Sequence record: KX397373.1
Length of the DNA: 64,000 nucleotides
Reading direction: 5' to 3' (one strand)
The notes beneath the pieces were generated by a model that worked only from the letters and a program-made list of their open reading frames with translations, searched no databases and was not told the origin of the DNA. Made by a program: the position numbers and the translations under genes. This document shows positions 5,331 to 55,136 of the stretch, piece after piece (position 1 is the first letter of the stretch; each line of letters starts with the position of its first letter).

Positions 5331-5461
5331 TGCTAAACGCCACACAGCGAAGATAACGTGTGCTAAGGCAACGTATGTACCGCAATCGCTTAAAACTCGT
5401 TACAGTGCGTTTGAGAGCGTTTTTAAGGCATTGAAAAGAAAGTTTGACTCCAATGTTTTTC

Positions 5462-5481
5462 AGATATATATTACCTACATG
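5462..5481 (+). promoter_or_regulatory. Putative early (virion RNAP) promoter
   Basis: AGATATATATTACCTACATG. One of 8 intergenic copies of this motif; contains the TATATTAC core reported for phiKZ early promoters. Confidence 0.75.
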
Positions 5482-5532
5482 AGAGAAAACAATTATCTCT
5501 CTAATCCGACCATTTCCTAAAGGAGTTTTACC

Positions 5533-5778
5533 ATGACTAAAATCGCATTCATCAAAGACATGACCAAATGCTTCGGTATCGCAGTGATGATTCTCGCATC
5601 TGCCATCATTGGCTTCCTGTCTCCGTTCGCCGTAATTGACGGTGTAACCTATCTGACCGGTAACATGGTTATCGGTGCGCTTACCGGTGGTGCATGGGGT
5701 GCAACCTTGCTTGTCGGCTGCTTCATGGGTTGGGACAAAGCACTGGTTAACTACTTGAAAGCCAAATTCAAAAAGTAA
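5533..5778 (+). CDS. Small membrane protein (paralog of 6505-6750)
   Basis: 81 aa with hydrophobic segments; AAGGAG RBS; shares LSPF..D..TYLTG....G...GG.W......GWD..L.N.L with 6505-6750. Confidence 0.8.
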   Translation: MTKIAFIKDMTKCFGIAVMILASAIIGFLSPFAVIDGVTYLTGNMVIGALTGGAWGATLLVGCFMGWDKALVNYLKAKFKK

Positions 5779-5787
5779 TACCCCTCT

Positions 5788-5842
5788 AGGCCACCACGCG
5801 GTGGCCTTTTTAATTCGACCATTATCCCATTAGGAGCAGTAA
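5788..5842 (+). repeat. Intergenic hairpin + TCGACYATT + RBS unit, copy 1
   Basis: GGCCACCACGCGGTGGCCTTTTTAATTCGACCATTATCCCATTAGGAGCAGTA; near-identical to 54581-54633. Confidence 0.85.
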
Positions 5843-6442
5843 ATGAACACAATTGAAATGGCAGTAAAAGCGAAAAACGAAGACCAGCTGGTGAATGCCG
5901 TTCTTTATAAACTGTCCCAAAAGTTCGGACACCAATACGTTTCCAGCGGCTTCCAGAATTTGACCACGCGGCCAAGCGGGGAGTACGTGTTGCCGGAGAA
6001 ACTCCAGGCAGCAAAAACCGATAACTATTACGGAGTCCTGGTACACCACATCCAAGCCGCATTGGCTGCGCAGTATGTGGGCTGTACTGTCCGTGTGAGC
6101 CCGGCGCAATATTACCGCGATGGCGATATTGACCCGATCGGTTTCTTTTGCGTTCATGTTGAACATCCTGACGATGGACAGGTCATCAATTTCGTGGTTT
6201 ATCTTCACCCGCTGGAAGCAGCATTCCACGCGGTGGATTTGAACCGGCTTGTTGAGATGAAGACGCTCGCAACACGCGAAACTCCAATCGTGGTACTTAC
6301 CCACGATATGATTTTAGAAGTAACCGGAATGGACTACGTAGATGGATACGTGATTGATTCCGTCAGCATTGCCGCACATGCCGCAGGCTGGTCAGATACC
6401 GAGCAATATGGACTGTCGTTGTTACTGTCCGCGATTAACTAA
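5843..6442 (+). CDS. Hypothetical early protein
   Basis: 199 aa, AGGAG RBS. Confidence 0.8.
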   Translation: MNTIEMAVKAKNEDQLVNAVLYKLSQKFGHQYVSSGFQNLTTRPSGEYVLPEKLQAAKTDNYYGVLVHHIQAALAAQYVGCTVRVSPAQYYRDGDIDPIGFFCVHVEHPDDGQVINFVVYLHPLEAAFHAVDLNRLVEMKTLATRETPIVVLTHDMILEVTGMDYVDGYVIDSVSIAAHAAGWSDTEQYGLSLLLSAIN

Positions 6443-6504
6443 ACACAACCGGGAGAGGAAGCTCTCCCGTAATTCGACCATTAAGCATAACAGGACACCT
6501 TAAG

Positions 6505-6750
6505 ATGACCGACGCTGAAATCAACTTCACAACACCACTCACGTTCAAACGTATTACCCTGGCCATCATTGCAGTCGTTGTTGTACTGCTGTCGCCTTTC
6601 GTTGTAACCGATGTAACCACGTATTTAACCGGCAGTGAATCCCTCGGGGAACTCATTGGCGGGCTTTGGAGTGTGCTGCTGGTAGCAACCTTTTACTTTG
6701 GTTGGGATACCCTGCTGCTGAACCACCTGCGCACCAACTTCACGAAATAA
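6505..6750 (+). CDS. Small membrane protein (paralog of 5533-5778)
   Basis: 81 aa, hydrophobic; preceded by hairpin 6450-6469 and TAATTCGACCATT. Confidence 0.8.
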   Translation: MTDAEINFTTPLTFKRITLAIIAVVVVLLSPFVVTDVTTYLTGSESLGELIGGLWSVLLVATFYFGWDTLLLNHLRTNFTK

Positions 6751-6800
6751 GCTTTACCCTTAACACAATTCGACTATTAACTATCTCAAGGAATACGACC

Positions 6801-7917: not shown

Positions 7918-8796
7918 ATGTTAACCATCGACCAATTCTTACCGAAGTCCGCAGGCGCAGCACCAAGCGCTGAGAACGCATCAATTGTCTACAAGCACGA
8001 GGAAGGTTATCGTTTAACCCGCCATCAGGGCGGTAGCACTGACGTCTTCTTTGTGGTGTGGGACGGTAACACCATTATCGCTTCTGGCTCTTACAACAGT
8101 TTGCAGATGCCAGAACGGCTGGCCAACGAAGACAAAATCCAAACGGTTTACCGAGTCCTGGCCCGTGGAGCCATCTGGTTGCTGGTGCTGACCCGTGACC
8201 CAATTGCCCGTTTAACAGCATTGGACAAATACAACGACTTCGTAGAAGCCATTACCCAACTTGAAGACTATCAGGATGACCGTGTAACACGCGCCATGAG
8301 CAGCTGGAAAGAAGAAGGTGAGATTGCACACTTTGCCGGTAACGCTATCCTGGCGCGCGCTGAGGCGCTGTATTTGGCCTTCCCAACCTGGAACTACGAA
8401 GTCATCAGCAAAGAAGTCGACGGCGTGAAGATGGAGGCGATGGTGCAATACGGTGTGCCGGGTATTCGTCTGCTCTACACCGTGAAGAACGTGGATGAGA
8501 AAGCCCGTGCTGGACAAGAGCTGAAACGCTGGTACACGTTACCGCTTGACGGCGACTGGTACACCGCTGCCGATAATCACCTTGCAGTAATGTCACAAAT
8601 CGCCCAGGGCAATAAAGCCGAGATGGAAGAACCTGCTCAACCGCAGGCTAAGCCTGCTGGGCGGCCGAAGCAAGACTTCACCTGTGAGCAGTGCGGCGCG
8701 ACGTATGAGATTATGCCGTTCAACCGTTTCGAAGCTGTGAAGGTGCGTTGTAAAGAATGCGGTCACGACCAGGTTGATGCCTACCGGGCAAAATAA
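7918..8796 (+). CDS. Hypothetical protein with C-terminal zinc ribbon
   Basis: AAGGA RBS before the ATG at 7918; CEQC...CKEC motif at the C-terminus. Confidence 0.75.
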   Translation: MLTIDQFLPKSAGAAPSAENASIVYKHEEGYRLTRHQGGSTDVFFVVWDGNTIIASGSYNSLQMPERLANEDKIQTVYRVLARGAIWLLVLTRDPIARLTALDKYNDFVEAITQLEDYQDDRVTRAMSSWKEEGEIAHFAGNAILARAEALYLAFPTWNYEVISKEVDGVKMEAMVQYGVPGIRLLYTVKNVDEKARAGQELKRWYTLPLDGDWYTAADNHLAVMSQIAQGNKAEMEEPAQPQAKPAGRPKQDFTCEQCGATYEIMPFNRFEAVKVRCKECGHDQVDAYRAK

Positions 8797-8801
8797 AAGA
8801 G

Positions 8802-8837
8802 ACCCTACTCCTTCGGGAGTAGGGTAGTTCTTTTTTT
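8802..8837. terminator. Bidirectional terminator between convergent genes
   Basis: ACCCTACTCC-TTCG-GGAGTAGGGT with an A-rich run before and a T run after. Confidence 0.8.
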
Positions 8838-8905
8838 GTCCTTATTTTTTTTGTGTTCGAGGACGCATAAACTGCCGTAGGGGAGCCTAAGCTCCCCGGT
8901 CGCTG

Positions 8906-13459: not shown

Positions 13460-14293
13460 GTGAAGAGAATTGAATTAGCAAGTTTAGCTTATATCCGTAC
13501 AGTTACTGGTGGTAAGTTGTTAGAGTTCAATGCGGGTGTTCACAACTTCATGCCAGACGTTTTCGTATCAGATTTGAAATTCGATATTCTTTATAACTTT
13601 ATCGAAATGCGCCTCTCCGTCTTAAAGGGTGATTTCGGAAAGTATTCAAGACTGGAAGGTGTCGACACGTCTAAGCTGAAAGTATTGGCCCTCGGAGACG
13701 GGTTGACCTTCGAGATAGTCAAAGACTACAACGACAGTGACGAAGAAATTATCGGTGTCCTGTCAAACTTCCTGTCTTTGACCGGGCTCTACCAGCAAAG
13801 CCACACCATCATTGAGCGGGTTGCTCATTCTCGGGTAAACGGTACAATATTGCGGTTGGTTCCACTACAGCATGATAAGACACTCACCCCAGCAGACATA
13901 CCTGCATACATGTCCGGCACGCTCAGTAACGATGACCTTGAGGTTGAACATGCATTACAGTCGATGTCGCTGTATTTCCACTCAAAAGGTGTGCGTCACT
14001 ACGTCCTGATGTTTGGCAACACTAATTCCGTCTGTATTGCTGGTGAATACGCCGGACCCAAAAATGAATACGAAGCACAAAATGGCACATGGGAAGTTTT
14101 CCGTAAGATAGATGAAAGCCAGCCCAGTCGTGAAATGCTTAACGTGGCCGATACCCTAATGGGCCTTTCGAAAATAGCCACATTGCCAGACGCTGGTTAC
14201 GCGTTAAAACTGGAAAATGGTTTAGGGGATGTCTCGCTCGGTCGACTCACTAAGGACGATTTAAGAAAGATTGCACTGGCACTTGTTAAGTGA
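13460..14293 (+). CDS. Hypothetical protein
   Basis: GTG start at 13460 after AGGAG. Confidence 0.7.
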   Translation: MKRIELASLAYIRTVTGGKLLEFNAGVHNFMPDVFVSDLKFDILYNFIEMRLSVLKGDFGKYSRLEGVDTSKLKVLALGDGLTFEIVKDYNDSDEEIIGVLSNFLSLTGLYQQSHTIIERVAHSRVNGTILRLVPLQHDKTLTPADIPAYMSGTLSNDDLEVEHALQSMSLYFHSKGVRHYVLMFGNTNSVCIAGEYAGPKNEYEAQNGTWEVFRKIDESQPSREMLNVADTLMGLSKIATLPDAGYALKLENGLGDVSLGRLTKDDLRKIALALVK

Positions 14294-52930: not shown

Positions 52931-53153
52931 GCCACGTAAACGTAAAGATACCGCCGTGGTAATGCGCGGAAAGAACGGTGGTCTGGTCGGCTACAATCGT
53001 AATGGTCGAATTGTGATTACACAAGAAGCCATCGATGGGATTCATCTGGTGTACAGTACCGCATACCGTTACCCACAAGCAAATAAGCTGGTGCGTGAAG
53101 TATTACGCAGGACCGAAACACGTTCAGCCTCGAGGGCTATGAATCATGCTTAA
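52923..53153 (+). CDS. Small basic protein starting MLKPRKRK
   Basis: Start moved to the ATG at 52923 after CCTAAAGGAG. Confidence 0.7.
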   Translation: MLKPRKRKDTAVVMRGKNGGLVGYNRNGRIVITQEAIDGIHLVYSTAYRYPQANKLVREVLRRTETRSASRAMNHA

Positions 53154-54066: not shown

Positions 54067-54074
54067 ATAAGTGG

Positions 54075-54110
54075 TACCCTACTCCTCCGGGAGTAGGGTA
54101 TTTCTTTTTT
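54075..54110 (+). terminator. Intrinsic terminator
   Basis: TACCCTACTCC-TCCG-GGAGTAGGGTA followed by a T tract. Confidence 0.85.
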
Positions 54111-54138
54111 TGTCTCAGCATTGATTAAAAATAATTTC

Positions 54139-54158
54139 AGATATATATTACTTAGGTG
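54139..54158 (+). promoter_or_regulatory. Putative early promoter with leader hairpin and TCGACCATT box
   Basis: AGATATATATTACTTAGGTG, a GAGAG/CTCTT hairpin, and TCGACCATT at 54184. Confidence 0.8.
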
Positions 54159-54213
54159 AGAGTTAATACAAATCTCTTACTAATCGACCATTTAACCTAA
54201 AGGAATTTGAATC

Positions 54214-54570
54214 ATGACTATCGTAACTACTGGTGTTCTGAATGCGCGTCTGGCAGAAACTGTTGCAGTGATTAAAGAAACTGATGCGCTTTACAATGAC
54301 CACCGTGACGGTGAGAAATACCTGAGCTATGCCGACATTAAATACTTCGGCGTAGCTTACCATCCGGAGTTCGGTCTGTGCTTAGTCGCGGCCCATTCTC
54401 CTGTACAGTCGCTGAACCGCATCACGGTTCGCGATGGCAAAGCTTACATCACCACTTGGGATGTAGGCGGTACCCTGCGTGCTGATTGGCACAAGGACGA
54501 CATGGAAGCAGCACTGAACGCGCTCATGTCAGCGAAGTACAGCAACCTGGTTGCAATCTTCAAAGCGTAA
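54214..54570 (+). CDS. Hypothetical early protein
   Basis: 118 aa, CCTAAAGGA RBS. Confidence 0.8.
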   Translation: MTIVTTGVLNARLAETVAVIKETDALYNDHRDGEKYLSYADIKYFGVAYHPEFGLCLVAAHSPVQSLNRITVRDGKAYITTWDVGGTLRADWHKDDMEAALNALMSAKYSNLVAIFKA

Positions 54571-54580
54571 GACAACCTTT

Positions 54581-54633
54581 GGCCACCACCCGGTGGCCTT
54601 TCTAATTCGACTATTACCATTAGGAGCATTACC
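54581..54633 (+). repeat. Intergenic hairpin + TCGACYATT + RBS unit, copy 2
   Basis: GGCCACCACCCGGTGGCCTTTCTAATTCGACTATTACCATTAGGAGCATTA; near-identical to 5789-5842. Confidence 0.85.
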
Positions 54634-55062
54634 ATGTTTACACTGAACTCTGAATTACGTGACTTCGTTCGCAACAACCCTAACGTTGCCTCTCTCGTTA
54701 TCGTCATCGCCGTTAATGGGCAGGACCCGAACGAATACGCTATTGAACAATACGAAGCGTTGCTCAAAGAAGCAAAACGTGCAGCGCTGTATGCACCACT
54801 GCCGAAGCGCGAACATTTCCCAGAAGGCGAACTGGGTGATACTATCTATCACGATATTCGTGCGCAATACTTCGTCAACCAACGCGTGTTCGATATTGAA
54901 CAAGCACCACTCGAAGGCCGTACCTTCGGTGACATGATTCGTAACTGGCGCGAAGAACTGATGAAAGATAACACTATCGCTGAACTCAGCAAATCTTTCA
55001 GCCAGACTTCACTGGACTTCGAGCAGCGTAACATCGCACTCGCTACCCATCGCGTTATCTAA
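54634..55062 (+). CDS. Hypothetical early protein
   Basis: 142 aa, AGGAG RBS. Confidence 0.8.
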   Translation: MFTLNSELRDFVRNNPNVASLVIVIAVNGQDPNEYAIEQYEALLKEAKRAALYAPLPKREHFPEGELGDTIYHDIRAQYFVNQRVFDIEQAPLEGRTFGDMIRNWREELMKDNTIAELSKSFSQTSLDFEQRNIALATHRVI

Positions 55063-55136
55063 GTAACACTCGGGAGAGCCTAGGCTCTCCCTTCTCTTAT
55101 ACTCATCTCAAATCTAAGACAAAAAGGAAATTCACC

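Follow-up and report, generated by a model that had tools for sequence, protein, structure and literature searches.

Why should an intergenic sequence of about 52 nt occur twice in one phage genome, 49 kb apart, in front of genes that show no visible relationship? The duplicate was noticed in a sequence-only reading of a 64,000-nt stretch of DNA (hereafter the window), which proposed that early operons are assembled from a reusable intergenic scaffold into which open reading frames are swapped by a cassette-like gene-capture system for host-takeover or anti-defence genes. The window is identical to positions 62001-126000 of record KX397373.1, the genome of Erwinia phage vB_EamM_Stratton (Stratton), a jumbo phage of 243,953 bp (genus Erskinevirus, species EaH2). 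Stratton encodes several split RNA-polymerase beta-type subunits and in this resembles the phiKZ/SPN3US group; its annotated recombination proteins comprise UvsX, an SbcCD-like nuclease and helicases. For the comparisons, the whole Stratton record and the whole genome of the congener Asesino were pieced together from annotated parts, and phiEaH2, the Salmonella phages SPAsTU and SPN3US (the latter of another genus) and metagenomic contigs were included as further relatives. Coordinates are those of the window unless the record is named, and all listed features of the two regions, locus A (gp83-gp85) and locus B (gp152-gp153), lie on the + strand.

The anatomy of the unit can be read directly from the DNA. 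It is composed of three parts: (i) a GC hairpin of 7-8 bp with a T-run, (ii) a box and (iii) a Shine-Dalgarno (SD) site. Copy A (5789-5842), placed between gp83 and gp84, consists of the hairpin GGCCACC-ACGC-GGTGGCC (5789-5806), a T-run (5807-5811), the box TAATTCGACCATTA (5811-5824) and the SD block CCATTAGGAGCA (5827-5838). Copy B (54581-54633), placed between gp152 and gp153, contains the hairpin GGCCACC-ACCC-GGTGGCC (54581-54598), the tetranucleotide TTTC, the box TAATTCGACTATTA (54603-54616) and the same SD block (54617-54628). Common to both are the GGCCACC-N4-GGTGGCC hairpin, the T-run, TAATTCGACYATTA and the SD block, and the alignment first described, with 47 matches, 4 mismatches and one 2-nt gap (about 90% identity), was reproduced. 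Both hairpins were flagged as terminator-like by the scan and dominate the RNA fold, in which the box and the SD site are unpaired. A search of Rfam with both loci (E ≤ 1) returned only sub-threshold chance matches.

The setting of the two copies was likewise as first described. The flanking proteins are dissimilar, with no alignment between gp83 and gp152 and an E value of 14 for gp84 and gp153. Each copy follows the first gene behind the same predicted AT-rich motif, termed class I (5464-5474 and 54141-54151), and is thus located between gene 1 and gene 2 of an early-type operon. The next spacers are also alike, both carrying GGGAGAG..CTCTCCC stems (6451-6468 and 55072-55091).

In a plus-strand self-BLAST of the whole genome, the pair (record 67789-67838 and 116581-116628; 90% identity over 50 nt, E = 3e-6) ranked third of only 8 intragenomic repeats, the others being a terminator family and promoter-like motifs, and it was a clear outlier among 105 spacer pairs. 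Searches of the genome and its relatives found the full unit in two copies only, and only in Stratton and phiEaH2. The GGCCACC and GGGAGAG hairpin sequences each occur exactly twice on the coding strand of the Stratton genome. Asesino contains no spacer duplicate comparable to the Stratton pair; it carries the GGCCACC hairpin once, at locus A only (after gp83), and the GGGAGAG hairpin once, at locus B only (after the gene of the gp153 family). These counts bear on the idea that spacers become alike simply by being selected to contain a terminator, box and SD site. A consensus of the box and its SD-proximal part (CCTNAAGGAG-like) does recur across many spacers, and the architecture reappears in SPN3US, as such convergence would predict. 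Terminator stems, however, are free of sequence constraint, and yet both 7-bp stems are identical, as is the second pair of hairpins; given also the exact hairpin counts in the two genomes and the outlying position of the pair, we consider this account highly improbable.

The box itself also recurs. The leader box TCGACYATT is present in 15 copies genome-wide, mostly in early-type operons. Its core, CGACYATT, has 18 matches on the + strand and 5 on the - strand of the Stratton genome; an SD site and a start codon follow directly after 15 of the 18 (P = 2e-19), and all but two of these 15 are 26-31 nt before the start. Searched with up to 2 mismatches, the 14-nt core gave 7 matches in the window, where 0.58 would be expected, and 11 genome-wide. 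Nearly all start-associated boxes belong to units headed by class-I or class-II AT-rich motifs, and they are found in two main settings: (i) the 5' leader behind a class-I motif, after a small 5' hairpin (gp83, gp121, gp152 and gp271), and (ii) internal spacers of the same operons (gp72, gp76, gp84, gp85, gp86, gp153, gp201 and gp272). Two more copies are located behind the second class of AT-rich motif, ATAGATATTATCY. In SPN3US the box has 10 forward matches and 1 reverse match; 9 of the 10 forward matches precede an SD site, and one unit consists of a hairpin, TTTT, a box and an SD site, with a different stem. Since SPN3US shares the layout but uses other stems, the architecture is a conserved design, and only the sequence identity of the Stratton copies calls for a historical explanation.

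Between Stratton and Asesino the box is no more conserved than the surrounding spacer, because the spacers are well conserved throughout. A role of the box as a translational enhancer pairing with 16S rRNA was considered and rejected, as duplex energies with E. coli 16S rRNA were no better than those of shuffled boxes. A near-perfect reverse complement of the box (13/14) was noted at 53000-53013, where the gp150/gp151 coding region carries it on the + strand and the box itself reads on the minus strand; pairing with box RNA is conceivable, and the match is probably due to chance.

Promoters were predicted only upstream of the operons. The class-I early-type motif TTYAGATATATWTTACYTAGGTGAGA occurs 7 times genome-wide, always upstream of genes and on the coding strand; the copy at 5464-5474 is the predicted promoter core heading the locus A operon. 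Read as sigma-70-like sites, the motifs of the two loci score 10/12 (5444-5472, TTGACT-17-TATATT) and 9/12 (54121-54149, TTGATT-17-TATATT). Early promoters of jumbo phages have been described as AT-rich blocks of about 10 nt near position -10 (PMC7598289), a description that the class-I motif fits. The predicted class-I early promoters could be read by the host polymerase, the virion polymerase or both. The sigma-70 scan found no site inside either unit, the operon-leading class-I motifs being the only matches. A literature search with the promoter word TATATTAC gave nothing useful, and no description of phiEaH2 or SPN3US promoters was found in the papers searched.

Several other repeated elements were recorded alongside. 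A further AT-rich motif, strand-specific and reading (G)ATAGATATTATCY with nnnGTGA behind it, has 13-14 copies upstream of genes, including those for RNA-polymerase subunits; its sites are at record positions 7996, 16543, 24654, 29897, 75411 (window 13411), 76354 (window 14354), 110564 (window 48564), 185523, 194218 and 240132, among others. The motif probably represents another class of promoter, with a 2-nt deletion relating it to class I. A strong terminator with the stem CCTACTCC..GGAGTAGG lies upstream of locus B (54073-54102) and belongs to a repeated family with three copies in Stratton (window 8802-8840, record 70802; window 54076-54114, record 116076; and record 179398-179430) and at least three in Asesino; at locus B it is also present in Asesino, SPAsTU and SPN3US. 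Such conservation of a terminator stem across genera is unexpected for intrinsic terminators. Outside the window, near the right genome end (record ~242930-243050), a very AT-rich block of repeated TTAATATCTTTAGATAT-type units was seen, which may be a replication or packaging feature.

The box comes directly after terminator-like hairpins with T-runs and keeps a constant short spacing to the start codon, which raises the question of whether each unit is a terminator-promoter cassette in which the box is a promoter for a multisubunit RNA polymerase of the phage, for example the non-virion enzyme acting at middle times. A unit would then terminate one transcript and begin another, just as the promoter-stem-loop elements of T4-like phages discussed below do. 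In jumbo phages, genes with continuous expression do have promoters of two classes in front of them (PMC7598289). Against this, the box also occurs within leaders, about 40 nt downstream of class-I cores; it shows no likeness to the known phiKZ/AR9 middle and late motifs or to sigma-70 sites, and structural, late-type genes are devoid of it. This explanation therefore appears unlikely to us, and a box acting at the RNA level is favoured.

The borders seen in the comparison with relatives show how the spacers relate to gene content. At locus A, the class-I core is followed by a 5' leader hairpin, GAGAGA-N9-TCTCTC (5481-5501), seen in the RNA fold and arranged in the same way after other class-I motifs, and by the leader box core CGACCATT (5507-5514), 26 nt before the start of gp83. 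The first gene, gp83 (5533-5778; 81 aa, phrog_16811), is 80% identical to Asesino gp83. The next two, gp84 (5843-6442; 199 aa, phrog_21313) and gp85 (6505-6750; 81 aa), are absent from Asesino. Between them lies the second spacer (6451-6483), in which the hairpin GGGAGAG-GAAG-CTCTCCC (6451-6468) is directly followed by a box TAATTCGACCATTA (6470-6483), and a further box, CAATTCGACTATTA (6766-6779), precedes gp86. In the whole-genome chain, the gp84-gp85 segment (record 67812-68766) measures 955 nt compared with 14 nt in Asesino, and two box copies border the indel, the box before gp86 forming the right border of this Stratton-specific segment. A three-way alignment showed that the Asesino spacer is composed of the left part of the Stratton gp83|gp84 spacer and the right part of the gp85|gp86 spacer, the changeover falling between T-run and box.

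The inserted gp84 is bracketed by hairpins, and the sigma-70 scan recognised no promoter of its own. Its relatives (28-52% identity), found in Machinavirus phages and a metagenomic contig, occupy a different locus, near BhsA-like and structural genes, where they are the first gene behind a class-I promoter; since they sit elsewhere, gp84 at locus A is an ectopic copy. On its two sides stand the paralogues gp83 and gp85 (37% identity). Both have a hydrophobic, glycine-rich core, and their sequences suggest that they are probably small membrane proteins.

Along locus B the nearest relative changes from segment to segment, which makes the locus a mosaic. Its leader (54141-54192) comprises the class-I core (54141-54151), a 5' hairpin (54156-54180) and the box core CGACCATT (54185-54192), and is 96% identical to that of Asesino and 87% identical to those of SPAsTU and SPN3US. 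In Asesino, SPAsTU, SPN3US and a metagenomic contig the same leader runs straight into the gp153 family. In Stratton the ORFan gp152 (54214-54570; 118 aa) stands between the leader and the gp153-family gene, its insertion bordered by the leader box and a second box; gp152 was found only in Stratton, phiEaH2 and one metagenomic (Logan) contig, L022 (80% identity). The following gene, gp153 (54634-55062; 142 aa, phrog_8484), occupies a hypervariable slot: it shares 87% nucleotide identity with SPAsTU and 70% with the Logan contig, and the Asesino occupant is not alignable at the nucleotide level (22% amino acid identity). The megablast match to SPAsTU starts inside copy B, at the end of the hairpin, 5 nt before the box. 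Behind gp153, the hairpin GGGAGAG-CCTAGG-CTCTCCC (55072-55091) is shared with Asesino and SPAsTU and is therefore ancestral at this locus; the second spacer is 92% and gp154 84% identical to Asesino.

The gp153 family is small (5 representatives at the 50% identity level), and gp153 is among the most rapidly replaced genes. The predicted structure of gp153 is a confident all-alpha model (pLDDT 92.8), for which Foldseek gave no match at E ≤ 0.001 (E > 1) and the best VIA Z was 4.4. The suggestion that gp153 is an integrase-arm or SAM-like DNA-binding protein was discarded, as it scored at chance level and the model has no structural neighbours.

The L022 contig separates the hairpin from the gene that precedes it. 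Its gp152|gp153 spacer reads stop-N15-box-SD and contains no hairpin, so the hairpin at locus B is a later patch and not the vehicle that brought gp152. To the left of the patch lies TTCAAA and to its right the box, and the two may have acted as short homologies in the patching. The upstream genes of the two loci also resemble each other before their stop codons (20 of 34 positions match), and a duplication reaching into the 3' coding ends, with a chimeric gp152 C-terminus, was therefore considered. It was rejected, because the gp152 homologue of L022 has the same 3' coding sequence without the hairpin; the 3'-end similarity thus predates the patch, and may reflect a left-hand microhomology (TTCAAA) or chance.

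We propose that the near-identity of the Stratton copies results from recent ectopic transfer between loci A and B in the Erskinevirus EaH2 lineage. By parsimony over five outgroup loci, from which both order and direction are derived, locus B would have received the GGCCACC hairpin patch from locus A, and locus A would have gained the GGGAGAG hairpin of locus B along with gp84. A rival account is a single accidental ectopic duplication or gene-conversion patch, the gene differences being ordinary phage mosaicism that could arise at any intergenic site. The limitation of the full unit to two copies and one species agrees with it, as do the absence of a comparable duplicate from Asesino and the many indel borders that have no box. 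It would leave aside that at least two transfers, in opposite directions, appear to link the same two loci, that borders at three sites fall on box copies and that variable genes are enriched behind box-bearing leaders. A one-off event of this kind is, in our assessment, possible and rather unlikely. The sequence-only reading had named it as the outcome to be expected if only two copies existed and the flanking genes were invariant across relatives; the first proved to be the case, whereas the flanking genes do vary.

The enrichment of variable genes extends beyond the two loci. The genes gp94, gp153 and gp271, each directly behind a box-bearing leader, share 21-29% protein identity with the occupants of the corresponding slots in Asesino, and their neighbours 84-96%. 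The first of them, gp94 (13460-14293), is the first gene behind its conserved leader and 29% identical to its counterpart; gp271 (record 225897-226292), in the same position, is 21% identical; genes adjacent to either exceed 90%. Judged from this divergence, both are candidates for host-interaction genes under exchange. No Pfam family was found for any of the slot genes. Overall, 6 of the 14 box-led genes were non-alignable with Asesino, compared with 17 of 241 others (Fisher p = 5e-4), an enrichment that comes from only four independent loci. The suggestion that genes between spacers would differ among relatives while the spacers stay constant was borne out for gp84+gp85, gp152, gp94, gp153 and gp271. 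Early genes may also be hypervariable for reasons other than their spacers. Although borders of indels or insertions lie on box copies at three sites, about 30 of the 36 indels or replacements relative to Asesino have no box at their borders, and the breakpoints around gp94, gp153 and gp271 coincide with ORF ends generally and not with the box specifically. Of the scaffold idea, the conserved spacers flanking swapped genes are retained.

Hairpin-containing repeats flanking unrelated ORFs, with box copies bordering insertions, could also suggest integron-like capture, with a phage enzyme that recombines DNA at the hairpin-plus-box units. A search for tyrosine recombinases (PF00589) gave no match in the whole record, although 14 of 14 control genomes scored. 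Moreover, the full unit exists in only two copies, the stems are short, perfect and different between units, and the gp152 insertion exists without a hairpin. We regard such capture as very improbable, and the dedicated gene-capture system originally envisaged was abandoned on these grounds and because most indels lack a box. The sole public sequencing run with this region (X1) consists of fragmentary contigs at about 3x depth, contains no joints and is too shallow to show circles.

The explanation that we prefer, with a probability of roughly 60%, is that the unit serves early-type operons as a control spacer between cistrons, and that general recombination at such conserved spacers, without a dedicated enzyme, makes them preferred joints for gene shuffling. 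Its regulatory roles and the recombination mechanism are what we infer from the anatomy and borders described above. The hairpin would probably serve as an attenuator of read-through, as a 3'-end stabiliser of the upstream cistron, or as both. For the box, an action on the RNA is most likely, by which the translation or decay of early messages would be controlled jointly; a function as a secondary promoter is less likely. The short spacer sequences are conserved within a genome as well as from one genome to another, and recombination proteins of the phage itself could therefore use them as joints. The transfers between the two loci, the insertions of gp84+gp85 and gp152 and the replacement of the gp153 allele would then be products of general recombination of the phage acting on the box, T-run, SD site and leader, and the expected outcome would be insertions, deletions, allele replacements and small ectopic patches. 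The comparison supports the notion that early operons are built from a small vocabulary of conserved spacers between which the genes differ among relatives.

A bolder version may be stated, which we consider improbable: the spacers would be recognised by a phage factor, such as a nuclease or recombination mediator acting at the box, or the box would be an early-mRNA signal of polymerase-encoding jumbo phages that also targets DNA exchange, so that phages of Erskinevirus and Seoulvirus would deliberately hold their early host-takeover or counter-defence genes in slots open to exchange.

Large sets of early genes, believed to act in host takeover, are carried by jumbo phages of the phiKZ/SPN3US type. 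If the spacers are joints of exchange, they would mark the slots of the most rapidly replaced of these genes (gp94, gp152, gp153, gp271 and gp84), making them candidates for host interaction. The practical value is modest, the spacers being natural, tolerated insertion points for engineering such phages.

Among known arrangements, the Stratton spacers invite comparison with four. A moron is an extra transcription unit inserted between genes that are adjacent in related phages, and it brings its own promoter and terminator. In the same way, gp152 and gp84+gp85 are additional genes that separate elements found side by side in relatives, and gp84 is bracketed by hairpins; gp152, however, uses the resident leader of the operon, and its L022 homologue has no downstream hairpin. 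Integron attC sites are likewise repeated, hairpin-forming sites flanking unrelated ORFs in a row, but Stratton has no integrase, no attI and no imperfect-palindrome attC architecture, and its borders fit short-homology recombination. In the jumbo phage AR9, with mapped transcript starts, early transcripts carry a conserved 5' UTR motif of unexplained role (PMC5312081). Like this motif, the Stratton box is a conserved sequence in early mRNA leaders of a jumbo phage and is distinct from the promoter; AR9 belongs to another phage group, and the likeness noted here is one of position, with transcript starts in Stratton being predicted only.

The closest parallel is offered by the PeSLs (promoter-early stem-loops) of T4-like phages, composite elements of an early promoter and a stem-loop, copies of which border indels and form mini-circles (PMC2839356, PMC4122927). 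Spacer-joint gene shuffling was thus known before in T4-like phages, and the present case would be a PeSL-like process in a new phage lineage; descriptions of PeSLs or PeSL-like elements were not found in the literature searched on phiKZ-type jumbo phages. Both kinds of element are short composite spacers (stem-loop, conserved motif, SD site and start codon) upstream of ORFans in variable regions, both border indels or replacements between close relatives, and general homologous recombination has been proposed for both. PeSLs, on the other hand, carry an early promoter of proven sigma-70 type, occur about 50 times per genome and were shown by PCR to yield mini-circles (Arbiol et al., 2010, PMC2839356; Comeau et al., 2014, PMC4122927), whereas the internal units of Stratton carry the TCGACYATT box and no sigma-70 promoter, amount to 15 boxes and two full units, are known from sequence alone and belong to a phiKZ-related phage with its own RNA polymerases. 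Of five PeSL features, three were found in Stratton, namely a stem-loop with an SD site, the association with variable ORFans and the location at indel borders, and the sigma-70 promoter is not among them. The Stratton spacers would thus be best read as working like PeSLs, without being classified as such. If they are indeed joints of exchange, the principle would extend from T4-like phages, which depend on the host polymerase, to a lineage that has its own polymerases and a different regulatory vocabulary.
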